Assembly: GCA_937625935.1 (NCBI GenBank)
Contig: OW569356.1
Span: 372,001 to 436,000, forward strand
Direction: 5' to 3'
Source: Tetramitus jugosus
Lineage: Eukaryota > Protista > Heterolobosea
DNA length: 64,000 nt
Shown: piece by piece, positions 248-52,827 of the stretch
Layout: every line of letters begins with the position of its first letter
Numbering within the stretch: position 1 is the stretch's first letter
Position numbers and translations under genes: made by a program
The notes under the pieces: generated by a model
Database searches by the model: none
The model's input: the letters and a program-made list of their open reading frames with translations, nothing else
Told to the model about the DNA's origin: nothing

Positions 248-1196
248 TTTTTTTTTTTTTTTTTTTTTTTTAATACAACCATTTCGGTTGCTCTTTTTAT
301 TGTCTTTGCTTATTCACTTGCCTACGCTCGAAGAGCGTGGGCCTGGTTAGCTTCCAGTTGGTAAGCAATGACGCCGGAAAGCGTCATTGCCGTTGATTAC
401 ATTTATCCTTCGTTGTAATGAACAGGTGGTGGAGAGTCTTGAGACATCTCCTCTTGACACTGTTCACATATGTTTTGGCTTTCTTCTGTGCCAGTGTCTT
501 CTTCATTCCTCCAGACACAAGGCCTTCAGCGACTTCCATGATGGCGTCCGTTTCTATACCCATCATTCCTTGCAGCAGTTCACGGCTAGACTTTTTGAGT
601 GGTTGCCTCACAACCTTTCCTTCCTTCAGTCGCACCTCATCGAACCAGACATCGACGTAGGCAGATTCGGGGATTCCCATCTTCTTGAGCTCATGTCCCA
701 CTTTCACAGCCAATTGCCTTCTAACCATAATGGCCCTTGGACACCTGATCAAGCAATGCAGCACACTTTCGGGCTCCTTCTGACACCAGCTGCACTTGAC
801 CTGTTCCTCACCAGTGTTGTACATATATCGCACAACTTCTGCTGTGTGGAGTGTGCCACTGCGTACCTGTGCATGGAACCACTCCAGCTTCCTGTCTATA
901 CCATGTGGGTATTTGATGAAGCTAAAATCTGCACCACTGTTATTTGCTGCTCTCTGTAGCCAACATCGCTCGTCTTCATCTATTCTTGCACTTCTTTCTT
1001 GATCAAACAACGACTGGAGATGCGATCTACTTTCCACATGCAGATTTCCTTTGTACAATGCCGGTTCTGCACCTTCGGCGGACATTTTCCCTCCACATCC
1101 ACATCCATCCATTCGGGATATTAACACTTTCAGCACCTCATACGACCTTGCTCCGACCTTGCAGGAGGGAAAAATATGCTTAAACTCCTTCAGACC
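248..1196 (-). mobile_element. 5'-truncated non-LTR (L1-clade-like) retrotransposon copy 1 with poly(A) tail
   Basis: T24 at 248-271 is the A-tail. AATAAA on the minus strand at 296-301. Open frame 384..~1196 with QVRSGTLHT and the CCHC finger CSWCQKEPESVLHCLIRC. The terminal 22 nt are identical to copy 2. The 5' junction lies about 29 bp upstream of tRNA-Thr. Confidence 0.92.
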
Positions 1197-1224
1197 TCAT
1201 AAATTAGAAAATCCTACTTAACGG

Positions 1225-1297
1225 GGCTCCTTAGCACAGGTGGCAGTGCGCTGTCCTAGTAAGACAGAGGTCACGAGTTCGAGTCTCGTAGGAGCCT
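1225..1297 (+). tRNA. tRNA-Thr(AGT)
   Basis: 73 nt; acceptor stem GGCTCCT/AGGAGCC, anticodon arm CTGTC-CTAGTAA-GACAG, T-loop GTTCGAG, discriminator T, T-run terminator at ~1308. Confidence 0.96.
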
Positions 1298-1396
1298 ACA
1301 GTAAACCTTTTCTTTCGGCCACAGTCGGGTGGAACTTTTACGGCTGGTCAAAACAAAATCAATTTCTTGTCAAAGAAAGAAAAATCATTGGTCTAA

Positions 1397-4300
1397 ATGT
1401 CTGAAGCACTTGCTACAGTGTTGAGTCCAAGAGGAACGAACAGCAACATAGGTATGTTTATATTGAGTCACTTAGTACGTTGGGTCCACCATTCAACAGA
1501 AATTAATCATATGAATCTTGAAACAATTCACCGTCTTTATTCCTTGAACAATAGTCCAAGTGGGAGCAACTACCTACATTAAGTACACAGACGCCAAGAA
1601 AGCAGTGTATTTTTATGTGAAAGGAAGAGAAACAGAGAAGAAACACAGATGGAAACAGTTCTTTGATCCCAATCGAAACAAGTATTATTATTCCAACTTG
1701 GAGCACAAGAAAACAGTTTGGTACTTGCCTGATGTTGAGAAAGAAGAAGGAAATATCAAATCTCCTCCAAAAGAAGAACCGAAGAAGGAAATTCAATCGC
1801 CCATAGATGAGGTGAAGGAGCAGAAGCAAGTGGAACCAACGAACACAGAGGCATCAAAGATAGAAGCAATGGATGAGCCAATAGTTGGTTTACCAAAAAT
1901 TGATCCTCCAACTGAAGTCCATCCTCTCAAAGAACTAAAAACGGAATCGCCGAGAGAGACTGTAACAGAACTACAAGAGAAAGAAACAGATGAAAACGAA
2001 GGGAAAGAGGATGAAGGAGGAAGCCTTCTTAATAGTACGATTTGGGGGTATATGGCGGGGAGAAAATCTTTTTCAGCTTCTTTCGCAGAGAATAATAGTC
2101 CATCAGACTCCTCGGCGTTCGACGATTTTGATTTTACTTCTAAAGAAACTCCTCTAAATTCACCTAAGATGCGAATGACTGCCAGTGATGGGAGCGAGGA
2201 GGAGTCTGTACCAGCATTCTCCGGGAAATTGACACGCTCTAATACTATACCAAATCAGAATGTCACTGTAGAACTGATAAAGTTTAGCAAGAAGGACCTA
2301 ATCGCAGGTAGAGGAAAATTAGAATCATGTATGGAGCAAGAACTTTTCAGGGGAGTAGGATTAGGAGAGGTGCATGTATTATGTGCTATTAAAGCATACT
2401 ATTTTAAAAAGGTACAAGCTAAAAAGGAGTTGGCCGTTGGGATAGCGAGAGATTATAGTGGAGCCTTTGGATTGTTCTTTGCACACTTCAGCCAAAAAAA
2501 GGGCAGAAAATTCTCAAGTATCGCATTTGACATACCTATGTTACACTTTTATGAAATGAGCCCAACAGTGACTGACAAAGATAATGTTCGATTTAATCTA
2601 AGTATCGATGGTTCAGAATTCGATTTAATGACGCATACCATTTTGAGAGACAAATTAAGAAGAGGCCTTGAGTTTGTGTACAAGTTAGTCAGAGCGAAGA
2701 AAGGGAAGGAATTATGTCTGTATCGAATGAGTTCCGTTGATTTTGCTGTGACGTATACAGTCCAGAGACCGATTCATACGCGGGAATCATTCTTGATGGA
2801 ACTCGTCACTCTCATTCAGAGAACAAAACATCCAGAACAACCAAATACAGACTTAGATGAACTCTTCCTAGATCTACGAATTCTTATAAGAAATGGTGAT
2901 GATAGAGAGTGGATTATCGAACAACTATCAGCTTTTACTAGATCTCGAGACTTTAAGCCTCGACATGTTGTTGTGTGTGCTCAAATACTCGATGTTGTTC
3001 TCAAAACTCCATCTCCTGTTGGAAATTTCCAGACTGAAAGAGCTGAATTGCAGAGAAATTTAATTCAAAGCATGATTCACATCTGGTCCAAGTTGAAGGT
3101 TCTTGATGATTCTTTGATTGTTCAACTTAGAGAAGAAACAGAGGACATATTTTCTGTCATGAGGAGTATTTGGAAATCAAGAGGTAATCTTCCAGATGTA
3201 AAGTTCCCGGATGACTTTTTCGTGGCAGAGACTATCGATTCGAAAAAGAAGTTAGCGGAGGACAAACTCAAGACCATACAGGATAGAAAGTTCAGAGAAT
3301 CTCTTATTGTGAAATCAATGGAAGAAGGGGTATTCCTTGCATGTATTTTCTATACTCCAAGTGGAGAGGTGCTATCTGATATGAAAGACAATCTGCCATG
3401 TGTACAACTTTCTAAATTGCACTATTCTGAGGCAAGAGATATTACTATAGATAGTGAGGATAGAATAATGGAATGGATGATGAGACTAGGTTTCTCCAAT
3501 TTTTCTCAGATCTTGTCAGAAATCGAAATAAGTCAAAATATTCGAAGAAAGGTTCCCACTAACGATCCACTGCGGAGAAACACAATTTCGGAGACTAATG
3601 AAGCGAAAGAAGTGTTTGTAAATTCAAGATTTAAGAAAGCCATGGCTAGGGCTTGTCTGGAATTGACTTCTCTGTTTAATATTGATTCCCTTGGTAATCT
3701 ATTCGACAAACCTATCAAAATGAGAGGAACCAATGTTGTAATGTTCGTAGCGGTTAGGAAACTTGACGATAAAAGGGCGATAACAGTTCCTTCTCTTTAT
3801 AAGTGGTCCAATAATTTTGAATTTGAGCATCATTTATATCAAAAGTATGAAGGCATACATGAGTTGTTGCCAATGGAAAGGTTAGGAGATCACTATACTG
3901 GTTCTAGGTGGCTCACAAGCGCTGTTAAGAATGATAGATATCTTAGACACAAGCTTAGGCAAGGTTTATATATCGGATTCATGTGTTACAGTACATCATT
4001 CACAGGATATGATGTACTAGTCACAGAAGAGAGAAGATTTATGCTCCCTCACTCCTTTGTAGGAAAGACTCTTCCAACTGAAGAACAGTGGATATGGATT
4101 CAAAGTTTGAGATGTAACATTGATGAGAGAAAGTCACTGCTAGGGGATGATAGAGATACAAGAGGGATTAATGCCTTTTCTCCTGACTATGAGCTTTACG
4201 AAAATTCTAGTATTCCCACGTTTGAATTGTTGTTTTACCGAGCACTTCTTCAACTCCAAAATCAATTGGGCATTGCATCAGTTCAGGATCTCGGAACTCT

Positions 4301-6605
4301 GTATGATCTTGAGCTGATAACACTCGATGAGATCGGGAAAACTAAGATGGTTCTGTTCGTTAAACACATTGAGCCATTTTCTCAGATAGATTGGACAATA
4401 ATCCGGCATACCTCCGATTTAGAAGAAGAGAAATCACATGATGAAGATGAGGTAAAGAGAAAAAAGAGAAGAAAAACCAAAAAGAGTCTGCCGTATCGCA
4501 ACACCTCTCCCTTTTTGTGGAGGAGAGGAGAGTTGTTTGAGGTGATGATGCTCCAGGTGTTTAAACCAGTGATATATCATTCTTACATGAAGAAATATAT
4601 CAATAATTTAGCTTGTGACATTAGGTGGACTAATAATTCCAAGGGTTTTGTAACTGACGAAGCAATAAGATTGGTCGCGAAAAAGGATGAATCCAAAGCC
4701 CTCTTGGACGAAGTGGACCTCCTATCTTTTGTTAAGCAGGAGGAAAGTTGGTTGACAGTTAGATGGCCTATACGAGTTATCAACTGGATGGACAAATTGT
4801 TGGGAGTAACTATCATCGACACATGCTCGTCCCTCGTAGAGTCTTCAAAGAAAATTGAGGAAGTGGAAAAAGCTCGAGTGTTGGAAAAGATGAAAGATAA
4901 AACTAAGTTTAGAGGAGCTGTATTGGAAGCTAATATCATCCGCGCATCTTACTACAAGATTCCAAAGCTCGAGAGGTTGATATCTGAAGAGATTACAAAA
5001 TCTGAGCATAATTCATTCGACTGGAACATAGTGGAAGAAAAATTGATGGCAGAAACTATGCTCGAAAAGAGTAACGAACTTGATAAAGGGGATGTTGTTA
5101 CAGAACAGGTAACCAACGTTCCATTCTTAGATGATGAGGAAGACTTGGAGAAGACAATTTGTTGCATGTACGACGTCGATGTTAACATAGAGGAAGTTAA
5201 AGATATCGAATCATTGAAGTTCAATCCAACAAAAGAGGAAATCACGGATATTGTTACTCAAGAGATGTTTGAAAAAAGTATTCTTCGTTCATTTGATGAA
5301 AGTGAACTGAAAGTGATTGAAATTGTGATGAATGAGATAGTAGATATGTTGGAAGTATCTGACGAACTTCTCCAAATAACAGTAAGCGGGGATAGATTTC
5401 AAGAATCCTTGATCATTTTGAATAGAGAAAGGACAAGGTATCAACAAAGCATCTTAGACGCATACAACAGAGTATTGGAAGAAGAAATGGGTACTTATGA
5501 TCATGAGAGATTAAAAAAACGTCTAACCACTGACAGAGACATGCATTCAGTACTATTCGAACAAATGAGTGAATTAGACTCATCGTACGAAGATATTATA
5601 CGACGAATGGTGATTCAGTATGACAATACAATGAAATATGCAAAACAGACGTTTCAAGTGATCAATAGTGCTTTGGAGACAGTCGAACTGAGTGAGAGCA
5701 TGTACCTCTATGAACGAACTCTTGAGAATCAAGAGCGCTTAAAGTGTATGATCGAAGAGCAACACAATTTCATCCCTCGAAATGACTTGACCATGATTGG
5801 TGTTACTAGAAAGGAACGACGATTCCTGACCTCAAATGGAAGCAAGATGATCGATTTTAGAGAGGATTCTGATTTTAGTTTCTGTCAACTCGGTGACACA
5901 GAAGAAGATATTGAATTTGAACAGGAAAGAATTAAGGCTCTAATCAAAAAGCAAGTGGAGATGGATGTAGAACGAGAGAAATGTTCCAGAAGTGCAATGA
6001 AATCATCATTGGCCAAGAGTTTGTTTGGATATCAGGGATTTTCATTGCCACGAAGTGTACCAGAGTTGCCTACTCCTCAGATGAAGTCCATCGATCGTCA
6101 CTCTTCTTCCATCTCTTCACCTCTCTTCTCTAAGAGTAGTAAGAATACGAAAACAAGACTCCCAGGTGAATCCTCAACTCTTGAATTGGGACAACCGCGA
6201 GATGATTGGTTCGGATACAAACCTCCTGAGCCAATGTCTATGACAGTCAAGAGACAATTGGAAAGCATCAGAGAGGCTAGAGAAAAACATCAGACAGAAT
6301 TGAGAAAGCAAGGTTTCTTCAGTGAGCAAAGCAAAGCGGTTCTTAACCTGAATCAGCTAATTGACATGTACAGTACGCTCAAAGTGAAGTCCTCCCGTTT
6401 CCTTACCGAAGACCAGCAACCAGCGAGAAACTTTCGGCGAACCCCTTCTCGTGTCCAAAGTCCACGACCCCAGCCACAAGCCAACAAATTCAAGTCGGTA
6501 ATCAATGTTGCGCAAATGTCTGAACTGTTGTCTGGTCCTTCTCATCCCTTTAGAAAAAGATCAAACTCTCGATCCTCCAACTCATTCAACTCAACCAATC
6601 AATAG
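1397..6605 (+). CDS. Large WW-domain protein of unknown function (exon 1397-1451, intron 1452-1554, exon 1555-6605)
   Basis: 1681-aa ORF with an N-terminal WW motif (RWKQFFDPNRNKYYYSNLEHKKTVWYLP). A GTATGT...AATAG intron joins ATG 1397 in frame. Confidence 0.75.
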
Positions 6606-6739
6606 CAATTCCTAGTTCAACAAACCAAAGACATTGCTTGCGTCATCCCACTTTCTTCATTTTGGATGAATCCAAAGATTTCTTTATCGTGTTTATTACT
6701 TGTTCTCCTGTCCTCGAATCGGCCAAGATCGTCGCCACA

Positions 6740-7330
6740 ACTTGAGCAATGAATGAGTAACAAGATAAATATACCTCCACATGAATACCAAGCCATATTA
6801 TGGACTTCTTTCGCGTGACTCAAATCATATGTTTTGATACGTAGTTTATCTGAACATATTCGAAATTTTTTGATTGAGCAGAACACATTCTCAACGATCG
6901 ACTTAAATTGGTTGTTGAAGTGTTGTTCATCGGGCTGAAGTTGAGACTCTGTTGTATACAGATATGGCAGTACTGTATTTTTCCAATACTGTTGATAACC
7001 CTTGAAACCCTTATCAAGAACAATAAACTCATCTTCATCGAGATCATCACCAATCATATTTTCAGGTAACACCATGAGCATTCACCAAACTTGCATTTTG
7101 TAGTGCCAATGGATTCCTGTATTATACATCACCTACTTACACTGGAAGTAAATCAGATGTAAGTTTGGTGTATGTCTACACTTCTTACCCGAATATAAAC
7201 TTTTTTCAGTCAATGTTGTGGAACAACTACTGAAATATTGTTCAACACCATCACCATTACATTGATTTGTATTCCTCTCCAATTAACTCCATGTGTGTCT
7301 CTGATTTCACGTATTTTGGGTACACAGCGA
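6740..7330 (-). pseudogene. PIF/Harbinger-ISL2EU-type DDE transposase relic (DDE_Tnp_4-like)
   Basis: Broken frames carry DGVEQY, YSGKKCRHT, LDKGFKG and FNNQFKSIVENVFCSIKKFRICSDKLR in the order typical of DDE_Tnp_4 nucleases. Confidence 0.75.
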
Positions 7331-7383
7331 TGAATTGTTTCATGACTGATGAAAGTAAAACAGAGCCATACTAAACTGCAGAC

Positions 7384-7427
7384 ACAGAATCCGCTGAATC
7401 CGTTTACCGGAATTAAGCGGATTCTGT
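7384..7427. repeat. Inverted repeat/hairpin at the MULE-Harbinger boundary
   Basis: ACAGAATCCGCT (7384-7395) and AGCGGATTCTGT (7416-7427) form perfect 12-bp arms; the spacer is partly self-complementary. Confidence 0.7.
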
Positions 7428-7471
7428 CAAGTTCTGTACAGTTATGCGAAGTATGGCAATCTTATGTTTAT

Positions 7472-11697: not shown

Positions 11698-12215
11698 ATC
11701 CCCCTGTGAACAGAGAATCGAGTGAAAGAATACAAGTACCGAACATTACTCAGTGAATGAGGAACTTAATTTGATGTTCCCTCCAGCATAATATCAATAC
11801 TTCCAAAACTTGTACATTCTCAGCAAGGGGCCATTTCTGAGAAGATCGACATACCAGTATGTCCATTGATAACAGTCAGTTTCGATCTCCTTGTTGATGA
11901 AGCTTTGGATAGAATCTGAGATATGTTACTCAAGTAGCACAGCAGATTGGTGGCAAGAGTGAGTAAGTGGGAGTAATTCAATTAACACTGCGTCCATCTC
12001 TTGTTTCATCGAAATCACAGATCAATCTTCAAGTATCATTGATATTTGAAAAGAATCAGGTCTTGTTCATACAGTTCTGGTTTGTTTGATTCGCTCTGTA
12101 TTGCTCGAAAACAAGGGACAACAAAAATGAACTGATCATGATCTGAACGATATTTGTCCAAAAATAGTGCGGCAAAGGAATCAGACCACAGCCACAACGA
12201 CAAACGACTTGCTTC

Positions 12216-29965: not shown

Positions 29966-30892
29966 ATGTCATCAATCACACTAAAACTAGAGCAACAAGC
30001 GAGACTAAACATTGGTCCATGCAATCCCTCGGTTCCCCCTTCCGAATACTTTAGAATGGCCGCTCAGTATTTACAACAGGCGGGACAAGCAAAGAAAGCC
30101 AATGACTTGTCCAATGCGTACCTGAACTTGATGAGTTTTTTTGTTCTGATCCAAGAGAGATTACCATCTCATCCAATGATTAACTACCCTCAGTTCCAGC
30201 AAGAGTATGCCTTCAACCTAAGCAAGTGCAATACTGTGCTCGCAACAGAGCGTGAAACTGTCAAGCAATTACTGGAGCCTAAGCAACAAGGTTTCTTGTC
30301 CAATTGGTTTGGTCCTTCTCCAACAACGCCTCCAAGGAGGGAACTACCTCCGACTCCAGTTCGTCTTCCTCCAACTCCAGTGTCTCCAATGTCACCAACT
30401 GAGCAACTCCAGTATAGAGCCATGGAGACTGTTGTGATGAATGACAAGGTCCAAGAAAGCGTAGGAAGAGGTGTTGCGAATCTGGCTACAAACGAAGAAG
30501 TTCAAGGTAAGGTGGCTGATGGAGTAGCCAATGCGGCAAGGAATAGGGGATACCAACAAGCCATCGGTAAGAGTATAGCTGAGAGTAGTGATAATGCATT
30601 GGTGAAACAAATGGCTCAAAATGAGAAAGTACAGGGTGCTGTAGGTCAAGCATTTGCTCAAACTGTTGGAAATAAGGAGGTCCAGAAAAAGATAGGCACT
30701 GCTGTCGCTACTGCCGCCACTAACAAAGAAGTACAAAAGAAGGTTGCTCAAGGATTCCTGGGTGCTGCAAGACTTGGTTGGAAAGGAGCCAAAGCTGGAG
30801 CAGGACTAGCGGTCAAGGGCGGAACACTAGCTTACAGTGAGTATCAGAGACAACAAGAAGAAGAAGCAAACAATCAGGTGGCACAAGAGTAG
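29966..30892 (+). CDS. USP8-dimerisation/MIT-like domain protein with helical repeats
   Basis: YFRMAAQYLQQA...DLSNAYLNLMSFFVLIQERLPSHP resembles the N-terminal domain of AMSH/USP8; Pro-rich linker; repeats of the form N-x-x-VQ-x-x-V/I-G/A. Confidence 0.65.
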   Translation: MSSITLKLEQQARLNIGPCNPSVPPSEYFRMAAQYLQQAGQAKKANDLSNAYLNLMSFFVLIQERLPSHPMINYPQFQQEYAFNLSKCNTVLATERETVKQLLEPKQQGFLSNWFGPSPTTPPRRELPPTPVRLPPTPVSPMSPTEQLQYRAMETVVMNDKVQESVGRGVANLATNEEVQGKVADGVANAARNRGYQQAIGKSIAESSDNALVKQMAQNEKVQGAVGQAFAQTVGNKEVQKKIGTAVATAATNKEVQKKVAQGFLGAARLGWKGAKAGAGLAVKGGTLAYSEYQRQQEEEANNQVAQE

Positions 30893-31119
30893 GATTCTCT
30901 AATGAACTTAGTAGTATGCTTCTTGAGTGTATGATTTTTTAATAGATCTCGTATAAAATGCGATAACAATCCGGCTGAGTAGAGTCTTGTTGAAGTGAAG
31001 TTGTCAGTTTATTGGATACTTACAAAGTTCTCAATGAAAAGCAGTTCTCCAGGGTGTTGTTCGAGGTGTAATTTCCTCTTGATCATCAAAGTTTGAGCTG
31101 CTCTCGACAACGCTGTAAC

Positions 31120-31136
31120 TTCTAAAACTAAAAATA
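31120..31136 (+). repeat. Target-site duplication, left copy (TTCTAAAACTAAAAATA)
   Basis: Identical to 32926-32942 and directly abuts the T25 tail. Confidence 0.93.
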
Positions 31137-32925
31137 TTTTTTTTTTTTTTTTTTTTTTTTTAATACAACCATTTCGGTTGCTCACTTTATTCTCAATACA
31201 TTTTCATCAGCCATCGCTCTTTGAGCGATGGCTCTTGGTCGTCTGATTAATTCCCAATGACGCTCGCAGAGCGTCATTGCTGTTGTTTCGCTTTTGTTGC
31301 GGTGAAGAGGTGAAGGAGAGTCGTGAGACATCTCCGTTTCACCCCATTCACAAAGGTTCTTGCTTTCTTACCGGCTTCTGTTGTTTTGATCCCAGTCGCT
31401 ACCAGTCCGTTGGTGACCTCTTCGGTGGCGTTTGTTTCTATGCCCATCATACCCTTCAGAAATTCTCTACTCGTCCGTCGCAAAGGACGCCTTTCCATCT
31501 TGCCATCCTTCAGTCGCACATTATCGAACCATATGTCGATACAGGACACACCCATGCTGGTAAGCTCCTTACTGACTGTCAAGGCTAGACATCTTCTTGC
31601 ATACACAGCCCTTGAGCATCGAATAAGGCAGTGCAGCACACTTTCGGGTTCTTTGTTACACCAGACACACATCGAGGGCTCGGTGCCAGTGTTATAAAGA
31701 CACCGAACAACTTCCTCCGTGTGGAGAGTACCACTTCTGACTTGAAGCTGGAACCATTCCAGCCTTCTGTCAACAACGTGTGGGTACTTGAGAAAGCTGA
31801 AGTCTGCGCCGCTGTAGTTGGCATCTTTTTGAATCCACCAACGCTCGCTCGTCTCTACACGTGCATTTCTCTCCTGATCAAACAGGGACTGCAGGTGTTC
31901 TCTACTCTCGACTCTGAGGTTACCCTTGTACAGAGCAGGTTCATTTTTAGTGGAGTTTTGGCTTATGGGACACTGACAGGTCCTCATTTGCGCCATCAAA
32001 ATGTTCAGTATTTGGTGCGATTTTGCACCTATCCTACATTTTGGGAATAGTTTCTTGAATTCTTTGAAACAGATGGGATGTTCCTCTACAAGCAGTTGAT
32101 TGCGGCTGACTATACCTGAGAGGTAGAGTTTTTTGAGGATGGTGGATGGTACGTACCTTGCCAATCTACACTCATCACACTGCGTAGTTGTACCTACAGT
32201 TAATCTGATCCCATGTACATGCATCCTGATGGCACACCACTTGTGGTAAGTTGACACGACATACTCGAGTCTGTTGCTTGACTGAAATACATTCTCTTGT
32301 TGGAATGTTTGGTGGAGCTTGATGTCCTCAAGCGTGTCAAGGAACAGCCTACGAGCTTCAGTGTCTCTCTTACCGTTGATCATTGAGAACACAAACCATC
32401 CAGTCTGCGTCGCAATTGTCTCTTCAATGTCCTTTAGTCCTACTGACCCGAGCTCAAAGCCGATGGACAGCAGCTCAGTCGGGAACCTCTTCATTGCCTT
32501 CGACCCGAACTTCACTAATGATCTTCCCAGTGCATTAACTTTGTTCAACCACTCAGCTGTCCAGTCAGTAAACTCTGATGCATAAGCGAATATAGGATGG
32601 ATGCACGTGTTCACCACCCGACTCACTTGTCTTGCGGTGAGTCTCATTACTTTGAGCCGAACAACCACCCTCTGTGCCTTTTGCCACGCTTGTTCTCTCT
32701 GTTTCTGGGTTGCACCCTTGAGATTCGTGTACAGACCCAGCGCACGAAACACCTGCCTGTTGTTTCTCCCCACCACCTTTGTGCCATCCACAGTAATGTC
32801 GTTCGATGACTTATTGTCCACTTTTCTGACGTAAAGTTCCAACTTGTCAGGATGCATTGTCATTCGGAGCCAACCCAAAGCGGTAGACATTGCTTTGGCG
32901 GCAATTTCAATGTCCTCCCTGGATT
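31137..32925 (-). mobile_element. 5'-truncated non-LTR (L1-clade-like) retrotransposon copy 2; intact frame, 17-bp TSD, A25 tail
   Basis: T25 at 31137-31161. The open frame starts just after the RT YxDD position (SREDIEIAAKAMSTALGWLRMTMHPDKL...FRALGLY) and runs through the thumb to the CCHC finger CVWCNKEPESVLHCLIRC. No RH/PD-(D/E)xK endonuclease follows the finger. Flanked by a perfect TSD. Confidence 0.95.
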
Positions 32926-32942
32926 TTCTAAAACTAAAAATA
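32926..32942 (+). repeat. Target-site duplication, right copy (positions -55..-39 relative to tRNA-Thr)
   Basis: TTCTAAAACTAAAAATA, identical to 31120-31136. Confidence 0.93.
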
Positions 32943-32980
32943 GAAATTTCAAGAGTTCTCGAGAAAATATTGAATATCAG

Positions 32981-33053
32981 GGCTCCTTAGCACAGGTGGC
33001 AGTGCGCTGTCCTAGTAAGACAGAGGTCACGAGTTCGAGTCTCGTAGGAGCCT
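32981..33053 (+). tRNA. tRNA-Thr(AGT), identical to 1225-1297
   Basis: Same 73-nt cloverleaf; T-run at ~33062. Confidence 0.96.
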
Positions 33054-33101
33054 AATTATTCTTTTGGAACTCAACAAACTAGAACAACAAAAACTAACAA
33101 C

Positions 33102-34492
33102 ATGAACGTGCTGTCGCACCACACATATGAACACTACGCCTTTAAATACCAGAATTCAGCAGACATCAGGTTACACACATTGGACCTCGGATCGCCAAAC
33201 AGCCGTATTGTACAAATGGTCGGCGGGACCAGTCACGTACTTATTCTGACAAGTGACAACCAGTTGTATGCCTGGGGGCTCATTTCCATTGATTCTGTCG
33301 TTCCCAGAAACTTGTCCGATAATGGGGCTCCGGATGGATGGTGGAAGCTGCAATCTCCGAACATGAAGCTCTGGAACACTATTGACGCGGTTGACTGTGG
33401 TGGTTTCTACTCTCTTGCACTTGTGAACCATGGTAGAGAGTTGTGGGGAGGTGGTAGTAGCTCCATGGGCGAGTTTGGCAACTCAGTGGTCAATAGCCAC
33501 GATTGGACATTGTTGCTCAATGTGGACAACCTGGTTGACAAGTGCCAGCAACATAACATTCTGTTTCCCCTGCGATCACCCATTGACTTCTTGACCAACA
33601 ATCCGAGTGATGGATCTGACAATCAGAGACATCACAGGATCACTCATATGAGTGCTGGCTATTACTTTTGGATTGTTGTACTCGATAATCGCTATATTTT
33701 TACATGTGGAGAACAGCGCGGGAAGCAATTGTGTCGTGATCGTCAAGATGCGGAGTCCAGTGAATACCAACTTATTAGTGAACAAGGAATGCTCAATGGA
33801 AAGATAATTAAGGAAGTACGTGCAGGATTCAGATATTGGATGGTGTTGACCACTGATAACCAATTGTATAGTTGTGGTGAGAATTCTTATAATCGTAAGT
33901 AGTGGTTATTGATTTCTGGAGTATCCTTTAGTTTTACTTTGTTTCGTGCTCATTTTTTTCCTGTTTACAAAATGAAGAATTGGGAGTTTTGGTAGATAAC
34001 GAAAGGTTACTACATCATGTTGACCTGAGCCATTCAATACCTAACTATCCCGTGTCCACTATTCGATCTCTGCTCGTCACTAAGAATAGTTACTTTACCT
34101 CTGCATTTTTGACCACTGATGCAAAAGTGTATAGTACAAGTGGATCTGAGATGACTCATGTGGGGAACTCGTCCTTCGCTGTCACAAAGGAGACATTTAT
34201 CACTCCAGGTGATATGATACAATACACCAATAGCTACACGATGTCAGTATTTGTTATTAATGGAATAGAAGCGTACTCATACCACAGAGGTGGAGATATC
34301 CTCTCCCCAATGGATTTGTCCCATTATAAACTTGAACGTGGCAACAGGGAAATCCTTGGCATCTACTGTGGATACTATGGAGACATGAATATTCTTGTTG
34401 GAAAACCTGCCTCTCATCTTCATCGACACTTTAGTTTGATGTCAAGAGCTAGAAAGGCCTACATGGATGTTGAAATCCTCACTGCTCATTAA
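33102..34492 (+). CDS. RCC1/BLIP-II repeat protein (intron 33895-33977)
   Basis: GGTSHVLILTSDNQLYAWG and AGFRYWMVLTTDNQLYSCGENSYN|QLG; splicing GTAAGT...AAG restores the RCC1 QLG motif. Confidence 0.8.
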
Positions 34493-36988: not shown

Positions 36989-37103
36989 AACGACAATAAG
37001 AAGGAAATACAATGCAAAGAAAAGCATAAAAGTCGGGTGAACAAAATTTTTTCTTCTTCTTTTTGCATGATCCACCAAACAAAAACAACAAACATTGATC
37101 AGA

Positions 37104-40264: not shown

Positions 40265-41263
<999 letters not shown>

Positions 41264-41375
41264 TCAAGTTTTCTCAGGAGCTCTGACCAAAAAGCACAAA
41301 GCTTTTCGAACACAAAACCACGAAAAAGAACAATCTTGTCCACGTGTGACACACATCACGTTATAACAACCATCG

Positions 41376-44384: not shown

Positions 44385-44399
44385 AGAATAAATACATGT

Positions 44400-45932
44400 T
44401 CAGTTTGAGTGCACGAACACTCGGGGAGCTCTTACAAGCAAAGATGTAGTCACCTCATAATTAATAGTCTGGGACCACGATGCGACTTCCTCGGCAGTAA
44501 TTTCCTCATCGCCTTGTTTTCCAATCAAGACAACTTCGTCGTTGACTTGAACGTTGGAACCACACTCTGTTAGATCAACAATAAATTGATCCATACACAC
44601 TCTGCCACATATTGGAGCCTTCTTTCCATTCACTAGCACATGACCTCGATTGCTGTTTAATCGATGATAACCATCTCCATATCCAACGGGAACAAGCCCT
44701 ACAGTGATATCTCTGTCAGATGGTGTCGAAAAGGTTCGCCCATAAGATATTGAGCTTCCAGGTGGCAATGTCTTAACTCTTGCCAGATGACTCTTGAACA
44801 TGAGTGCCGGTTTCAATTCAAATGGCAACTTTGGATCATGTGCAATGCTTCTCGGCGAAAGACCATAGATCGAGACTCCTGGTCTCACCATATCCATGTG
44901 ATACTCTGGATAGAACAGAGAGGCGGCAGAGTTTGAGCAATGGAACAAAAATTCATTTCGGGACGCAATCATCTGATTCGGTGTCCCATGATCACTTAAA
45001 TATACGCTCACAATATCTCTTCTAAGTTCATCAAATATCTCGTATTGGTTCCTCGTGTACTGGATGTGCTCTTCATTCTCTAGCTCGTCAGCCACTGAAA
45101 AATGAGTGAACAAGCCTTCCCATTGAACACCACTCTCCCGTACCAAATCACTCTCGACAATCTGTTCCTTGACAAATGGTAATACTTCATGAGGCAACAG
45201 ACCAAATCGACCCATGCCTGTATCGACTTTTATATGAAACTTTGGTTTCCAGGATTCATGATGATGTCTCTTTGCACTGTTCTTGTCTTCATGTTTCATT
45301 TGCAGCACCGCCTTACAATACTCCTTTAGTGTGTCAACCTCTGTAATGGCAGGTGTGAGATGATACTGTGCAGCCAAGCGCATCTCATCTGGAAGACCAT
45401 AGCCCAACACCACAATTGGCACTTCTCCTTCTTCAGCTTTATCAACAACAAGCTTAATAGATGATCCATCATGATGCGTGCTTTGCTCGCGAAGCTTTTG
45501 CTTTTGGCGCAAGTGCCTTCTTAGCTCTACACCTTCAGACACTCGATTCACAGCAAATCGATGAATAAGCTGACTTGTTGTGGCATTGTCTAGCAAAGCA
45601 CTAGCAATATCAGCAGCACCGTGACCATAGGCATTCGCTTTGATCACTGGCATGACTTGAACTGGAGAGGAATGGACTTGCACATGGTTGTGAATTTGGA
45701 TGACATTGTGGATAATGTGATCCAAGTTCACTTCATAGTATGTGGTTGGCATCTTCTTGTGATTGGTTTTGTTGCGTTGTTGCAGAGTGCTTGGACCGTC
45801 ATACTGGAGATTGCCGCTAGGACGACGCAAAAAATGACCTTGTGTATTGAGAAGGCTCCCGTGAGTGCGACTACTGTGTAGCGTTTTGGCGCGAATCAAT
45901 GCCGTCGTTCGCATTGCGTTAGTTCTGAACAT
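44400..45932 (-). CDS. alr: Bacterial-type alanine racemase with N-terminal presequence
   Basis: VIKANAYGHG (PLP Lys), HIKVDTGMGRFG, GLFTHFSVAD, HCSNSAA, MVRPGVSIYG, ISYGRTF (catalytic Tyr), GYGDGY, GRVCMDQ and TINYEV. Confidence 0.95.
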   Translation of the reverse strand: MFRTNAMRTTALIRAKTLHSSRTHGSLLNTQGHFLRRPSGNLQYDGPSTLQQRNKTNHKKMPTTYYEVNLDHIIHNVIQIHNHVQVHSSPVQVMPVIKANAYGHGAADIASALLDNATTSQLIHRFAVNRVSEGVELRRHLRQKQKLREQSTHHDGSSIKLVVDKAEEGEVPIVVLGYGLPDEMRLAAQYHLTPAITEVDTLKEYCKAVLQMKHEDKNSAKRHHHESWKPKFHIKVDTGMGRFGLLPHEVLPFVKEQIVESDLVRESGVQWEGLFTHFSVADELENEEHIQYTRNQYEIFDELRRDIVSVYLSDHGTPNQMIASRNEFLFHCSNSAASLFYPEYHMDMVRPGVSIYGLSPRSIAHDPKLPFELKPALMFKSHLARVKTLPPGSSISYGRTFSTPSDRDITVGLVPVGYGDGYHRLNSNRGHVLVNGKKAPICGRVCMDQFIVDLTECGSNVQVNDEVVLIGKQGDEEITAEEVASWSQTINYEVTTSLLVRAPRVFVHSN

Positions 45933-46013
45933 TGCGTTTTTGTTGCGAATTCGTGAAAAAATGGAGGCATGATCGGAAAAAAATAGCGTGATTGTATTGT
46001 GGGTGCTCCTGCG

Positions 46014-48263: not shown

Positions 48264-48446
48264 CGTGTCTCTCAGTTCAGTTGTTTTGTTCTGGTTGAGC
48301 GCTTTTTCTGTGAGCTTTCTCCACAACAGGCAAGAGAAGGTGATTCCAAGCTGAGAAGCATATGGTTTTCCAGCTGCAGAAAAAATTGTCGGGGAGTAAA
48401 TTTATCGTCGCGGCAATCTACGGAAAATCACCAACTCTCTTGGAAG

Positions 48447-51146
48447 ATGTTCATGCAATCGAATCATGCAGTGGGTAGAGAAGCCAGAAGAAACAAAAAG
48501 TATGGAGTTTCTGACGTGGATATGTTGAAAGAGCTCGATGAAGCAGTTCAGAGAAAAAATAGGGAAAAGATGATGGAAGCTCAAAGGGAGAAGCAAGAGA
48601 TTATGGAGCATTACCGGAATTATGATTTGGGAGTTCAGGAAAGGTTAGAGGGAGACAAGTTAGATGCAAGAGGTTTTGATGAACCAGAGATCATTCGGAC
48701 CAGAGCTGCCGAAGTCGAGAGTGCATCGCGATCGAAGAATGAATTGTTTGGTTCGAACTCATTGAATAATTACAATGAGAATGAACGTTTCAGAGATGCA
48801 ACCAAGAACGATGATACGCTTACTAGAAGAAAAAACAATATTAGCCGGCGAGTATTTGACATATTCAATGAAGAAGATCAACGAGAAAATGAACGGGGAA
48901 CAATGATTGCTCAGGGAAGAGCAGACAATAGAATAGAAGAGGAAGGAATCGTGAATCGAAGAAGGAGTAAGAGAGATGAGGTATACGAGAGAAAGAAACA
49001 GCTTCATTTGGCGCGACAAAGAGGAATAGATATTGATGAAGTTGATGAGTTTCCCCAGAGGATGCAGAGACACTCTGCTCGGAGAGAACATCCACCAATA
49101 CCTATGCCTATAAGCCGAGAGGACACCAAAGATACTCCATCTTTCTTTGACAAATTTGGAGGGGATGCTAGTCCTAAACCGAAGCTTGGTCAACCCACTG
49201 GGGTTATTAGAGTGAATGACAGTTACGAAGAAAAAAAGAAACAATTCGCTAAAAACTTGAGCAACGCAAGCTCGGGAGGGCTGTTTGACAAATTAGGACA
49301 CAATGAACAACCAAAAGGAAGAGTGTACGGAACTGTTGCAAGAATGGAACCATCTCACTCCAGTAGGAGCCCTGTCAATCAAGACCGCCCATCGAAGTTC
49401 GACTACCAGTTTAATGATTCACTTTCCTCTCCAACGAAAGAAAAATCTATTACAGATATGGTTGAACAAGAAACTGTACAGAGGAAAAGAGAACAAGCTC
49501 GAAGAGCATTGGAGTATCAGCGAGAAATTGAGAAGCAGATTCAAGAGAAGGAAGAAAGACAGAGGGTTCAACGAGTAAAGGAAAAGGATCAGGAGGAGAG
49601 AGAACATAGGAGAATGATAGAAGAACAATCTTCTCAGAGGAGGAAAATCTCTTTCGATGAACCACTTTCTCAAGATTTTGTTACTCGAAAGAACAGCACC
49701 CTTGAAAATAGAGAGGTAAACTCACTCTCCCCTCGTGGTGTCAAAAGCGGAGCACTCAAGTACTCTGAACCGAATGCTGTGAGAGAGAGGGAAACAAAGC
49801 AAGAAAAACAAAGATTGTATCAATTGGAATTAGCAGCTCAAGCTGAAGAACAGAGAAGGGCCAAACAATTACAAAAAGAAAAAGAAAGGGAAGAGGAGAG
49901 AAAAGAATCTGAAAGGATCAAGAGAGAAGTAGAAGAGGAAAAAAGACGATTTGCTTTAGAGAAAGAAAAAGAGAAAGAAACAAAGGGTACTTCATTGAAG
50001 GAGACGCCGGTGGTGATTGAGAAGAAGACTGGAGAAGAACAACCACCAACGGTGAACGAGTCCCTTGAAGATATAATGAAAGCAAGAAAAGAATCTAGGA
50101 AGAATACATTGGAAAATAATCAACTATCGGACAACGCTCCTGAACAAGGTGCATCTACGGAAGATAAGATTATTCCAATAGATTCTGAGGAAAGAGAGCC
50201 TCCTCGTGTACAAAGAACCAAAAGAGAGAGAGCTCGGACACAAACTGATGAAAGTGATTCGGATGATTTTATCATAGAAGAAAGAATTATAACTAGAGTT
50301 CCAAAGAGTAAGGGCAAGAAGAAGCGAAATGAAAAATCTGAGAAGGATGTGGCGGAGTTGCTAGCGAATTACCTTCAGGGACTTGCTTCGAACTTTAACG
50401 CTGTGAAGGAAGAGTTGGACTCAGTAAAGAAGAAAATCAATGATAAACCTGATATTGGCGATCCACCAAAAGAGCCTCCTCAAGAGATACCACCTGAGGT
50501 CCCTGACAAGAAACCAAAAATCCAATCCCAATTTGTTCAAGGATTACGGGACAGCATTGAGTTAGGAAGATCTCTAGAAACAGAGAGTGTTTTTCTGTTC
50601 CCCACCGTGGAACCTGACACTCGAATTCAACAGCCTAGACCTCGATCTGCAAGAAGAATCAGAACTCCGCGCTTTGATAGGCTAATGCCAGCAGACATTA
50701 ACAAGATCATGGTAGACAGTGACAGTGAAGGCGAAGACTATTTTAGTCAAATCCTAGAAATGAATTTGGGCAGAAACAGGGATTTAGAAGTTATAGCTTC
50801 AGAAACTTCCTTTGAGAAGGCTAAAGATTTAGTTGGTGAATACTTAGCAAGAACAACACCGAAGAGTCATCCAAGAACACCCAATACTGCATCTGAAACT
50901 TCTCATACGTATCGAGAAAAGAGTGTCATATCGACTAATTCTTCTGTTAATTCCTCTGTATCATCTCCACTAGGAAGAAGACTTCAGAGACCGAGATCTG
51001 CAGTTGTGGAACAATCATTGCCTTCTCACTCGAAATTTATTTCAAATCTGGCTCATGGATTTGAGTTCAACGACTCAGATTCAGATGGAGATACTTTGGG
51101 ATCGGAAACACGGTTATGTCTGAATGACTCAGGAACTCCTTCCTAA
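48447..51146 (+). CDS. Coiled-coil protein, possibly CCDC66/CSPP1-like
   Basis: ORF of about 900 aa with repeated YQ.E(L/I)..Q..E..R....KEK..EE charged helices. The family call is tentative. Confidence 0.5.
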   Translation: MFMQSNHAVGREARRNKKYGVSDVDMLKELDEAVQRKNREKMMEAQREKQEIMEHYRNYDLGVQERLEGDKLDARGFDEPEIIRTRAAEVESASRSKNELFGSNSLNNYNENERFRDATKNDDTLTRRKNNISRRVFDIFNEEDQRENERGTMIAQGRADNRIEEEGIVNRRRSKRDEVYERKKQLHLARQRGIDIDEVDEFPQRMQRHSARREHPPIPMPISREDTKDTPSFFDKFGGDASPKPKLGQPTGVIRVNDSYEEKKKQFAKNLSNASSGGLFDKLGHNEQPKGRVYGTVARMEPSHSSRSPVNQDRPSKFDYQFNDSLSSPTKEKSITDMVEQETVQRKREQARRALEYQREIEKQIQEKEERQRVQRVKEKDQEEREHRRMIEEQSSQRRKISFDEPLSQDFVTRKNSTLENREVNSLSPRGVKSGALKYSEPNAVRERETKQEKQRLYQLELAAQAEEQRRAKQLQKEKEREEERKESERIKREVEEEKRRFALEKEKEKETKGTSLKETPVVIEKKTGEEQPPTVNESLEDIMKARKESRKNTLENNQLSDNAPEQGASTEDKIIPIDSEEREPPRVQRTKRERARTQTDESDSDDFIIEERIITRVPKSKGKKKRNEKSEKDVAELLANYLQGLASNFNAVKEELDSVKKKINDKPDIGDPPKEPPQEIPPEVPDKKPKIQSQFVQGLRDSIELGRSLETESVFLFPTVEPDTRIQQPRPRSARRIRTPRFDRLMPADINKIMVDSDSEGEDYFSQILEMNLGRNRDLEVIASETSFEKAKDLVGEYLARTTPKSHPRTPNTASETSHTYREKSVISTNSSVNSSVSSPLGRRLQRPRSAVVEQSLPSHSKFISNLAHGFEFNDSDSDGDTLGSETRLCLNDSGTPS

Positions 51147-51409
51147 ATTTCGATCACTTCCTTTGTACCCTCATATCTAGGGAAGTTCAATTATTGGCGA
51201 AGAAGAGATGATTTTATCGTACAATTTCGGTTGCTATCACACAATTCAGAAGGTCGGATTCCATACACACATTGTATTCATAAAGCATCAACATCATCTC
51301 TTTAACACCAAGGCTTGTGAAGAGACAGACATAACTTGAAACTTCGTACTGCTACCTGTCAAGCAAATCTTGCTTGAGGGAAAATTCAATTGTTTTTTAA
51401 TGCAGAGTT

Positions 51410-51943
51410 GTGGTTCTTTTCTCTTATTTAGAGCCCAAGAAGACAATTGCTTTCGAACGAGTGAAACTACCATTCTCTGATCCTGTTCGAGATCTCAGAC
51501 TTTCTCCACTTGGTACTCATATGATGCTTAGAACAGAGAAGGATTTATGGGTCAGTGGATCGAATAAGTCTGGTCAATTGCTCACCGGAGACTGTAAGCA
51601 GGTGAATGGCATACAAAAGTGTAACATTGAAAGCATCGTGGGCAATGACGAGTATCGCTTGTTTTTGGCCAGAGGTAGGACCTTTATGGCCACAAGAGAC
51701 AATCTTTATTGTGTAGGAGAGAACAGGTACGGTCAACTTGGTCTCCTCGATAACATTACGAATTACAAGGTGCGCAGAGTGCCGATTGATTTCAGTGACA
51801 AGGAGCTTGTTGGCGTGGAGGGGGGCTACGATTTCACATTCTTTGTTTGCAGACGAACAAACTGTTATGGCTTCATGAACAATTTACATCGATGTTTATC
51901 GCACAGTGGCTTTGTGGATATTGAGGTGAAGACTGAAGAATAA
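51410..51943 (+). pseudogene. RCC1-repeat gene fragment (probably 5'-decayed)
   Basis: LWVSGSNKSGQL, LYCVGENRYGQLG and GGYDFTFF; C-terminal FVDIEV resembles YMDVEI of the 33102 gene. No clean ATG or upstream frame. Confidence 0.6.
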
Positions 51944-51952
51944 GCACAAAAT

Positions 51953-52312
51953 TTACTCGTGTGGCATTCCTACGAAGCTATCGACTCTCCAGAACGCAAG
52001 GATCAAGTCTCTCAAATGGTCTTGATCGACCTCTTGGAGAAGTCTCTTCCATCTCCTCCTTAGATTAAAACATGTATCGAGAACGGTGACACCCTGATTG
52101 CCATTTGTTTTCCTCAACCCTCTGCCCATTTGCTGAACAAACACCAATTCTGATTCTGTTGGTCTCGCCAGTACAACACAACCAATATCCTTCACATCGA
52201 ATCCCTCATTCATCATCATAACGTTGATCACAATTTTAATGTGGCCAGCATGAAACTTGTCCAATACATCTTCCAGGACACACATATCAAGAAACCGCGG
52301 ATCTCGATGCAT
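51953..52312 (-). pseudogene. Orphan helicase C-terminal domain (ResIII/Irc3-like SF2)
   Basis: VINVMMMNEGFDVKDIGCVVLARPTESELVFVQQMGRGLRK gives motifs V and VI; the N-terminal ATPase half is absent. Confidence 0.8.
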
Positions 52313-52316
52313 ATAC

Positions 52317-52720
52317 TTTTTTTTCCATCTTTAACTCTTTGACTTGGCTGGTCTCATAAACTCCAGCTTGTCCAATTTGGCCTTGAATTCCTCAACCAGT
52401 TCCTTTCTTGCCCTTTTGGCTTCCTCACATTCCACTATTAAGTGGTTGATAGTCTCTGGGGCGCTTGCGCAGTGAGCACACATGACCTCTATCAACGGCT
52501 CAAACAAGTCGCGCAGGACAGTATGGAGCGTCCACTTCTGACTTGCTCAACGCTTTATCACCTATCCTATCAACACTTCCAGAGTGCCATTCGGTGTTCG
52601 CCACTCCTCCCATCTCTTTTCGCATGGTTTGCCAAGAATTTCCATGGAAGCCCTTATGCTTGAGTATCTTGCTGGGCCAATGTCCTTCAACTTGAACTTT
52701 GCTTCTAACGGCTCGAATTT
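52317..52720 (-). mobile_element. Old, internally deleted copy 3 of the same non-LTR family, upstream of tRNA-Asp
   Basis: Manual translation of the minus strand: KFEPLEAKFKLKDIGPARY...EQVRSG/TLHTVLRDLF...MCAHCASAPETINHLIVECEEAKRAR. It shares QVRSGTLHT (1-nt frameshift) and the CCHC finger with copies 1 and 2. The finger is not in the supplied ORF track. Confidence 0.85.
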
Positions 52721-52756
52721 TAAAAAAGTACAAATGTTAGGGAAATGAAAGTATCT

Positions 52757-52827
52757 TCGGTCATGGTATAGGGGTAGCATTTCAGACTGTCACTCTGGCG
52801 ACCCGGGTTCGATTCCCGGTGATCGAG
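52757..52827 (+). tRNA. tRNA-Asp(GTC)
   Basis: Acceptor TCGGTCA/TGATCGA, anticodon arm TCAGA-CTGTCAC-TCTGG, T arm CCGGG-TTCGATT-CCCGG, discriminator G, T-run terminator. Confidence 0.94.

Follow-up and report, generated by a model that had tools for sequence, protein, structure and literature searches.

A group of LINEs in a heterolobosean-like genome lies antisense and at a narrow distance upstream of tRNA and 5S genes

The window, the whole 64-kb stretch of DNA that was analysed, raises the question of whether its non-LTR elements are directed to genes that RNA polymerase III (Pol III) transcribes, or whether their position beside such genes has another origin. ARAGORN finds exactly three tRNA genes in the window, all on the + strand: two tRNA-Thr(AGT) genes, at 1224-1299 and 32980-33054, which are identical to each other, and a tRNA-Asp(GTC) gene at 52756-52828. 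As the sequence-only reading had proposed, an antisense non-LTR element is present directly upstream of all three.

The tRNA-Thr gene at 32980 is preceded by a clean, 5'-truncated LINE copy on the - strand (element 2, 31137-32925). Read from its 3' end, this copy comprises a poly(A) tail (the T-run at 31137-31161), a 3' UTR with two hairpins and a terminal GGTTGTAT (31162-31273), and an intact reading frame for the 538-aa C-terminal part of ORF2 (31274-32890), all on the - strand. Element 2 is flanked by a target-site duplication of 17 bp, whose two copies, distal at 31120-31136 and proximal at 32926-32942, match perfectly; the nick for the first strand falls between 32942 and 32943, on the upstream side of the tRNA and 37 bp away from it. 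Given the position of the proximal duplication, which starts at 37 bp, the 5' end of the element therefore lies 54-55 bp upstream of the tRNA, in agreement with the earlier estimate of about 56 bp.

At the tRNA-Thr gene at 1224, a second 5'-truncated copy occupies the - strand from 248 to approximately 1198 (element 1), as recognized by a protein search and a weak zf-RVT match. Its parts, again on the - strand, are a poly(A) tail (the T-run at 248-271), a 3' UTR (272-383), and a C-terminal fragment of ORF2 (384-1196) that shares 62% identity with residues 275-536 of the 538-aa protein from element 2 (tblastn), identifying it as a subfamily copy. The 5' end of element 1 is approximately 25-28 bp from the tRNA, which is closer than usual, and a search for its target-site duplication found none. 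While the insertion previously described at this gene is thus present, the locus is in fact a stack, since a fourth copy in the window (element 0) abuts the poly(A) of element 1. This distal stack member, at 1-247 on the - strand, is a frameshifted ORF2 fragment from an older copy that leaves the window at its left edge, and was recognized by blastx through its approximately 40-44% identity to ORF2 of copies L008, L006 and L005 (E 1e-10).

Upstream of the tRNA-Asp gene, the - strand holds a degenerate internal fragment from the zf-RVT region (element 3, 52336 to 52712/52720, blastx), which is truncated at both ends and is without its 3' end; its 5' boundary lies 36-43 bp from the tRNA. The elements of the window had been described as homologous, and while this holds for elements 1 and 2, element 3 is only distantly related: it gives no tblastn match with the 538-aa protein, and its relation to the LINE family is seen by blastx (E 2e-5). 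It belongs to a distant subfamily with at least 25 genomic copies of 74-96% identity. The neighboring segment at 51944-52275 does not belong to element 3; it derives from a Helicase_C gene, and a single 98% copy of this fragment exists elsewhere.

The full element is approximately 5.3 kb long, and consists of a minimal 5' UTR, ORF1, ORF2 (with APE, RT and CCHC regions), and a conserved 3' end followed by poly(A). With a length of some 10-27 nt, the 5' UTR is so short that the ATG of ORF1 lies almost at the end of the element; ORF1 encodes about 434 aa, and ORF2, in the -1 frame, has an ATG that overlaps the ORF1 stop codon by 7 or 4 nt. In ORF2, the APE domain (PF03372) matches residues 5-201 with 37.8 bits, against a curated cut-off of 24.5, and RVT_1 matches with E-values of 1e-24 to 1e-27. 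This predicted order, with the endonuclease N-terminal to the RT in one ORF, is that of an APE-type LINE. The CCHC motif (zf-RVT) is weak, at 16-21 bits, below the Pfam cut-off of 27.5, yet it shares homology with the zf-RVT of P0260, which does pass that threshold; no RNase H domain was detectable in ORF2. With regard to L1-like clade features, R2 and L1 ORF2p score equally in PDB sequence searches. The AlphaFold model of the 538-aa C-terminal part (mean pLDDT 49.8) was too poor for a fold search. ORF1p is predicted to adopt the order RRM-RRM-coiled coil, the last part being a long helix or coiled coil (pLDDT 82), and the Transposase_22 profile gives no match to it. Genomic copies measure 0.4-5.3 kb and each terminates in poly(A); approximately 19 of them show target-site duplications, which are 10-20 bp long. 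No family varies in the terminal GGTTGTAT, and at least five subfamilies, with ORF2 identity down to approximately 36%, have the targeting in common.

The sequence-only reading had also named a counter-case, in which the majority of copies in the genome would be remote from Pol III genes or randomly oriented. A genome-wide survey revealed the opposite: of the 35 non-stacked copies whose 5' flank was resolved, 34 are placed head-to-head with a tRNA or 5S gene. In total, the 5' flank was resolved for 43 copies in the 26-Mb genome: 34 have a tRNA (32) or 5S (2) gene within 90 bp, and every one of these is on the strand opposite to the gene, with its 5' end leading; eight lie directly behind the poly(A) of another copy, and so form stacks; and one is off-target. 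These counts rest on 69 loci together with coordinate cross-matching, and are lower bounds, 80-97 candidates having been scored out of 235-463. The targeted tRNA genes carry at least 17 anticodons, and no same-strand element upstream of a tRNA or 5S gene was seen among the copies found. The chance expectation that a given copy has a Pol III gene within 100 bp, with both side and strand being right, does not exceed 0.003.

The same pattern emerges from each sample. Among the top 30 ORF2 loci, 13 have resolved 5' ends, ten of which are at a Pol III gene, two stacked and one off-target. An antisense tRNA is present 46-88 bp from codon 1 at 21 of the 27 unique ORF1 loci, with a further five behind the poly(A) of another copy and one undecided on its 5' side. 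When judged by coordinates only, an antisense element is present upstream of 13 of the 53 top-scoring tRNA genes and six of the 47 5S genes, and a same-strand element upstream of none (0/53 and 0/47).

Furthermore, the distances fall within a narrow range. In 12 autonomous insertions with a target-site duplication, the gap from the tRNA to the duplication, corresponding to the first nick, is 37-45 bp (mean 40.2, SD 2.2), while in the 5S insertion L013 it is 34 bp; the 5' end of the element is 50-62 bp from the gene, and the nick site has no sequence consensus. Together, the tight gap, the single orientation, and the range of tRNA species and 5S genes support the proposed position-specific insertion genome-wide. 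The off-target copy, L002 (C3, approximately 410-413 kb), is young and has a clean target-site duplication of 15 bp; it is located downstream of a mitochondrial-carrier gene, at a distance of about 115 bp, and its 532-bp flank is free of Pol III genes. Targeting is therefore a strong preference, but not absolute.

The LINE group appears to be active, or recently active. Two copies with different target-site duplications, element 2 and the copy at C3:410161-411774, encode 538-aa proteins that are 100% identical; in addition, ORF2 (1293 aa) is intact in one copy, and ORF1 in another. The intact state of all seven ORF1-only copies, described below, points the same way. Short read contigs from four runs, for positions 30600-33600, contained no clean empty-site joint at the target-site duplication and no RNA contig on the element, a result that is neutral with respect to activity.

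It thus appears very probable that this LINE group uses target-primed reverse transcription to integrate upstream of Pol III genes, at a position that is fixed. In this mechanism, the ORF2 endonuclease cuts the tRNA-sense strand at a point 37-45 bp upstream of the 5' end of the mature tRNA (34 bp in the case of one 5S gene), reverse transcription begins on the poly(A) tail, and a second nick 10-20 bp further out creates the target-site duplication. Such nick geometry always leaves the element antisense, with its 5' end at the 50-62 bp given above, and repeated insertion at one gene pushes older copies outwards into same-orientation stacks. The target would be read not from DNA sequence, but via the Pol III pre-initiation complex at the upstream edge of TFIIIB, a contact that we infer by analogy.

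A different origin of the pattern would be random or weakly biased integration, with purifying selection in a gene-dense genome sparing only insertions into harmless places such as tRNA upstream regions. The genome is indeed gene-dense, and the one off-target copy sits in a 3' intergenic spacer. Yet other intergenic spacers are not populated, and the very young copies with 100% protein identity are already patterned; furthermore, selection cannot yield a nick window of 9 bp, nor can it strictly confine insertions to one orientation at the 5S genes and at no fewer than 17 tRNA species. We consider this explanation highly improbable. Alternatively, the association could be inherited, either through segmental duplication of units containing a tRNA and an element, or because the mobile unit itself includes the tRNA, for instance in the role of a promoter module. 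While both of the identical tRNA-Thr(AGT) genes do carry an element, those two elements represent different subfamilies, each insertion has its own duplication and its own flanks, and many tRNA species as well as 5S genes are involved. Moreover, the target-site duplications sit between the tRNA and the element, and the tRNA therefore lies outside the mobile unit. An inherited association is thus scarcely credible.

If integration is indeed targeted to the Pol III complex, the question becomes which element protein reads it. An abundant ORF1-only family (L061-L069) bears on this point. Its 1.31-kb units, flanked by target-site duplications of 12-15 bp, contain a 5' UTR, ORF1, the LINE 3' end and poly(A), without ORF2, and so have a HAL1-like structure. 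ORF1 is intact in seven of seven copies, and its dN/dS values of 0.20-0.44 indicate that it is under purifying selection (dN/dS approximately 0.3). Since these units have the target site and the 3'-terminal GGTTGTAT in common with the autonomous elements, they are probably mobilized in trans by the autonomous ORF2p. An A-rich motif behind many poly(A) tails, AAAACGCAG...ACGGAATCAC, was considered as a tRNA upstream promoter element and rejected, since this sequence forms the 5' end of ORF1-only family members and therefore reflects stacking.

The ORF1p encoded by these units is approximately 35% identical to autonomous ORF1p, and their nicks lie 29-38 bp from the tRNA as compared with 37-45 bp for autonomous copies. 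This shift of approximately 7 bp toward the tRNA (Mann-Whitney p ~0.007, small n) hints that ORF1p influences the position. By analogy with TRE5-A, whose ORF1p binds TBP, Brf1 and Bdp1 (Chung 2007, cited in PMC5911963), the present ORF1p, with its predicted tandem RRMs and coiled coil, may be the adaptor. Conversely, targeting could be real and yet be read by the ORF2p endonuclease from features of DNA or chromatin, such as bent or nucleosome-free DNA or R-loops, with neither a TFIIIB contact nor an ORF1p adaptor. The ORF1p model does resemble an ordinary RNA-binding chaperone with tandem RRMs, and an ORF1-only element could gain its specificity from ORF2p in trans; but the closer nicks of the ORF1-only family and the TRE5-A interactions speak against it, and we regard this possibility as unlikely.

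The adaptor role of ORF1p is one part of a joint reading, according to which docking on the Pol III complex arose independently in Discoba, an adaptor ORF1p unrelated to that of TRE5-A sets the nick, and the promoter is supplied from the tRNA side. As a whole, this reading is possible but doubtful. Its last part arises from the near-absence of a 5' UTR, as a result of which the fixed divergent position beside the tRNA gene may also provide the promoter of the element. If so, targeting would serve expression besides safety, and the elements would represent a natural and compact system that directs integration to a landmark conserved among eukaryotes, with no guide RNA.

The suggestion that the host is not a dictyostelid is borne out by its coronin, whose only named close relatives are from the heteroloboseans Willaertia (57%) and Acrasis (46%); by this comparison, the host looks heterolobosean. 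No match to an already described family was obtained in the sequence searches that were run, and no report of this targeting family was found in the literature searched. Dictyostelid proteins were absent from the named proteins among the best 120 word-search matches, and from the ten best long HMMER matches that were looked up, in which the named ones came from Artemia, a pseudoscorpion and Closterium. A word-based search detected no relatives of the C-terminal half of ORF2. The contigs of the nearest database relatives (L031, L072, L073 and L074) contain no tRNA, but their flanks are too short, or the contigs stop where the element does, which makes this negative neutral as to targeting in those organisms. 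ORF1 of L074 has no detectable relation to the LINE ORF1. The LINE family also occurs in groundwater and soil metagenome contigs.

Pol III-gene-targeted retrotransposons have been known only from fungi and dictyostelid amoebae (2018 review PMC5911963; survey PMC5006619), and TRE-like LINEs were searched for in other Amoebozoa and not found (PMC5006619). The present LINEs add a third, very distant lineage with the same head-to-head geometry at 40-50 bp, and lend weight to the idea of a general safe harbor, located at the upstream edge of the Pol III transcription complex, into which compact genomes drive their LINEs. They also provide an independent system for asking which element protein reads the Pol III landmark, and their several subfamilies and ORF1-only derivative, with one common target, are natural comparative material for mapping the targeting determinant.

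The known elements most similar in geometry are TRE5-A, TRE5-B and TRE5-C, L1-type non-LTR retrotransposons of Dictyostelium discoideum and other dictyostelids, which insert upstream of tRNA genes, 40-54 bp from the mature tRNA end, in the opposite orientation and with the 5' end facing the gene (PMC5911963, PMC5006619). At 5S genes, both groups insert slightly closer (37-41 bp for TRE5, 34 bp for the present LINEs); both have two ORFs, of which ORF2 is in the -1 frame and has the order APE-RT-zinc finger, and both exhibit an oligo(A) tail, target-site duplications and repeated insertion at one gene. These likenesses raise the possibility that the present LINEs are true homologues of TRE5, either anciently vertical or horizontally transferred, rather than convergent. 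However, the host is heterolobosean-like whereas TRE5 hosts are amoebozoan, and no specific sequence affinity was detected, as judged from the names of database matches. In addition, the C-terminal half of ORF2 is without a detectable relative, and TRE-like elements are reported to be absent from Physarum, Acanthamoeba and Protostelium (PMC5006619). TRE5 has modular UTRs, with A/B modules on the 5' side and B/C modules on the 3' side; the present 5' UTR has no A/B modules, and the predicted ORF1p architecture and the abundant ORF1-only partner are further differences. Homology with TRE5 is therefore judged to be quite improbable.

A precedent for the convergent gain of TRE5-like geometry is NLTR-B from Polysphondylium pallidum, a non-TRE LINE found 39-64 bp upstream of tRNA genes (PMC5006619, PMC5911963). 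NLTR-B has three ORFs and an RNase H instead of a zinc finger, whereas the present LINEs possess a CCHC motif and no detectable RNase H. The ORF1-only element, in turn, resembles HAL1 (half-L1) from mammals, which is likewise non-autonomous, retains only ORF1 and the LINE 3' end, and presumably borrows ORF2p; it differs from HAL1 in being as precisely tRNA-targeted as its autonomous relatives, and in the apparent purifying selection on its ORF1. Finally, Ty3 from S. cerevisiae and other Ty3/gypsy elements use Pol III start sites as a safe harbor, with TFIIIB as the landmark. Ty3, however, is an LTR element that inserts by means of an integrase, 1-4 bp from the start site and in either orientation, while the present LINEs appear to use target-primed reverse transcription, approximately 40 bp away and in one orientation.

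The window carries three tRNA genes according to ARAGORN, all on the plus strand: two for tRNA-Thr(AGT), at 1224-1299 and 32980-33054, and one for tRNA-Asp(GTC), at 52756-52828. Minus-strand retroelement sequence lies immediately upstream of every one of them, which bears out the antisense insertion at all three genes described in the sequence-only reading. Element 2, at the second tRNA-Thr gene, retains an intact minus-strand ORF of 538 codons (31274-32890), separated by a 112-nt 3' UTR from its poly(A) (a T-run at 31137-31161), and is flanked by a perfect 17-bp target-site duplication (31120-31136 and 32926-32942). The tRNA gene is 37 bp from the duplication and 54-55 bp from the 5' end of the element, in agreement with the earlier estimate of approximately 56 bp. 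Element 1 (248 to about 1198, minus strand) encodes a protein 62% identical to that of element 2 and has the same 3' end architecture; only about 25-28 bp separate its 5' end from tRNA-Thr, and no target-site duplication was found for it. An older, frameshifted minus-strand copy (window 1-247, blastx E 1e-10) adjoins the poly(A) of element 1, and the locus is therefore a two-member stack that extends past the window edge.

The window elements had also been taken as homologous to one another, which holds for elements 1 and 2, but only distantly for element 3 (52336-52712/20, minus strand). This element belongs to a distant subfamily and survives as a degenerate internal piece; it was missed by the genome search with the 538-aa C-terminal part of ORF2 encoded by element 2; it is repeated at least 25 times across the genome and resembles the CCHC region of ORF2 (E 2e-5). 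Fused to its truncated 3' side is a minus-strand Helicase_C gene fragment (51944-52275, a 119-aa frame). This fragment does not belong to element 3; it has just one other genomic copy, 98% identical, at G000:C33:249701-250032, and it could be a transduced or rearranged piece of a host gene.

When the 26.35-Mb genome (56 contigs) was searched with the same 538-aa probe, 86 scored matches were obtained among 463 candidates, at 36-100% identity. Thirteen of the 30 best ORF2 loci contain the element 5' end; nine of these adjoin a tRNA gene, one adjoins a 5S gene, two lie behind or inside another copy, and one, L002 (G000:C3:408661-413274), is off-target. The full ORF1 probe yielded 102 genomic matches, from which 27 unique loci were evaluated: 21 have an opposite-strand tRNA 46-88 bp from codon 1 (one of the 21 is degenerate), five immediately follow the poly(A) tail of a different copy, and one lacks a resolved flank. 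This protein search of the whole assembly, with distance and orientation recorded, had been proposed in the sequence-only reading, where copies far from Pol III genes or in random orientation were named as the outcome that would speak against targeting; instead, 34 of 35 non-stacked copies, window included, stand head-to-head with a Pol III gene, and a single copy is off-target. That copy, L002, is young, its ORF2 part being 100% identical to window element 2, and is bounded by a clean 15-bp duplication; it lies downstream of a mitochondrial-carrier gene, at a distance of about 115 bp. Neither ARAGORN nor Rfam found a Pol III gene in its flank, and it is a true off-target insertion.

The targeted tRNAs represent at least 17 anticodons, and the 5S rRNA genes, which are scattered singly across many contigs instead of forming tandem arrays (at least 47 were scored), are additional targets of the LINEs. 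From coordinates alone, an antisense element is located upstream of at least 13 of the 53 top-scoring tRNA genes and at least 6 of the 47 dispersed 5S genes, while a same-strand element precedes none of these 53 tRNA and 47 5S genes. The chance expectation of such placement is at most 0.003 per copy.

Among 12 duplication-verified autonomous insertions, the distance between nick and mature tRNA end is 37-45 bp (mean 40.2, SD 2.2), and the target-site duplications have no sequence in common. The analysis shows that integration proceeds by target-primed reverse transcription: the tRNA-sense strand is nicked first, at about -40, a second nick follows 10-20 bp further upstream, and this placement fixes both orientation and position. 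It likewise shows that stacks arise from repeated use of one gene. At G000:C38:177000-190600, at least seven copies in one orientation extend over more than 13 kb, and all of them appear to lie upstream of a single tRNA-Phe (about 190504-190577); one copy, L024, carries an internal deletion that links the APE N-terminus to the C-terminal region of ORF2.

TFIIIB covers roughly 40 bp upstream of the Pol III start site. Since the nick site follows no consensus and the targets include unrelated tRNA and 5S genes, we infer that the landmark is most likely the Pol III pre-initiation complex. In Dictyostelium, TRE5-A depends on an intact B box and contacts TBP, Brf1 and Bdp1 through its ORF1p (PMC5911963). 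The host TBP gene of T. jugosus is located on contig C22.

The full autonomous unit, delineated from overlapping loci of four genomic copies, is about 5.3 kb long and comprises a 5' UTR of only about 10-27 nt, ORF1 of approximately 434 codons, ORF2 of 1293 codons, and a 3' UTR of approximately 120 nt followed by poly(A). Given the near absence of a 5' UTR, it may be speculated that the tRNA-proximal flank might act as promoter. ORF2 lies in the -1 frame, and between its ATG and the ORF1 stop there is an overlap of 7 or 4 nt. At one locus, L044 (G000:C46:125295-129353), ORF1 runs into ORF2 without a break, giving a single frame longer than 850 codons, which is either a natural fusion or the result of a 1-nt indel in the overlap. 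ORF2 contains an AP-endonuclease domain (PF03372, above the Pfam cut-off), an RVT_1 reverse transcriptase domain and a C-terminal CCHC motif, which scores slightly below the Pfam zf-RVT cut-off and can be aligned with the above-threshold zf-RVT of one database relative. RNase H, present in some of the nearest relatives, was not detectable in ORF2. ORF1 matched no Pfam family; an AlphaFold model (pLDDT 82) of its conserved N-terminal 235 residues places two RRM-like domains ahead of a long helix and is structurally closest to tandem-RRM proteins, HuR and the DBHS proteins among them. The remainder of ORF1 is variable, first acidic and then basic. In all families the octamer GGTTGTAT is invariant just before the poly(A), and the hairpin ahead of it exhibits some compensatory changes.

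The ORF2 copies fall into at least five identity groups, at about 100-92%, 70%, 58%, 45% and 37%. All of them, including the group of element 3, are located at Pol III genes, and targeting is therefore older than the divergence of the subfamilies. A 46% subfamily copy, L028, has a 996-codon open frame whose 5' part contains a short stretch (oriented positions 300-345; G000:C12, about 65000) that, on the complementary strand, looks like a tRNA T-arm and acceptor end.

The commonest ORF1 group encodes 382 aa, approximately 35% identical to the autonomous ORF1, and has no ORF2 downstream. This 1.31-kb unit (loci L061-L069, for example G000:C15:83470-84780 and C52:233500-234520) consists of a short 5' UTR, ORF1 and a 3' UTR ending in the octamer, followed by poly(A) and a 12-15-bp duplication. 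The insertions are found 29-38 bp upstream from tRNA genes, and their targeting matches that of the autonomous elements in precision. The frame is intact in all seven copies examined, pairwise dN/dS is 0.20-0.44, and this ORF1 is under purifying selection. The family is a HAL1-like, non-autonomous LINE derivative that presumably relies on the autonomous ORF2p for mobilisation. Compared with the autonomous nick, its own is approximately 7 bp nearer the tRNA (p about 0.007, from small numbers), a shift that hints at a contribution of ORF1p to setting the nick position.

That the host does not look dictyostelid, as had been stated, is upheld by the window coronin, for which the best 120 hits contain only two close relatives with names, the heteroloboseans Willaertia magna (57%) and Acrasis kona (46%). 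The sequence is found again in metagenomes from soil and groundwater. The window also contains an intact alanine racemase gene (44400-45932, minus strand; both Pfam domains, E 1e-44), a possible bacterial acquisition in a eukaryotic genome, and two adjacent plus-strand genes 14 bp apart (56694-59462 and 59477-61693) with two Ion_trans domains each, which are tandem two-repeat cation channel genes.

The closest relative of ORF2 is a 682-aa protein with 60% identity on a 3-kb contig of assembly GCA_037189345.1, and beyond it there are only generic LINE reverse transcriptases, with about 22-30% identity. For the C-terminal half of ORF2 no relative was detected. A full HMMER scan of 1.84 billion representatives gave the same outcome. 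Of ten long hits from it that were looked up, Artemia, a pseudoscorpion and Closterium accounted for four, five had no name, and one was labelled 'exonuclease III' without an organism; none of the ten was dictyostelid. A 5553-nt Logan contig (ERR11571142; L074) holds an AT-rich full-length LINE of another organism, with the order APE-RT-RNase H-zf-RVT and an ORF1 unrelated to that of the T. jugosus elements; there is a resemblance, possibly coincidental, between its first 25 nt (A-run, CGC, A-run, ACGG) and the 5' end of the T. jugosus elements.

Pol III-targeted retrotransposons have been placed only in fungi and dictyostelids (PMC5911963, PMC5006619), TRE-like elements are reported absent from Physarum, Acanthamoeba and Protostelium (PMC5006619), and no literature on Heterolobosea or Naegleria with tRNA-targeted retrotransposons was found. 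The TRE5-type behaviour of the T. jugosus family may be convergent or anciently homologous, and the family differs from TRE5 both in the organisation of its UTRs and in its ORF1-only partner.
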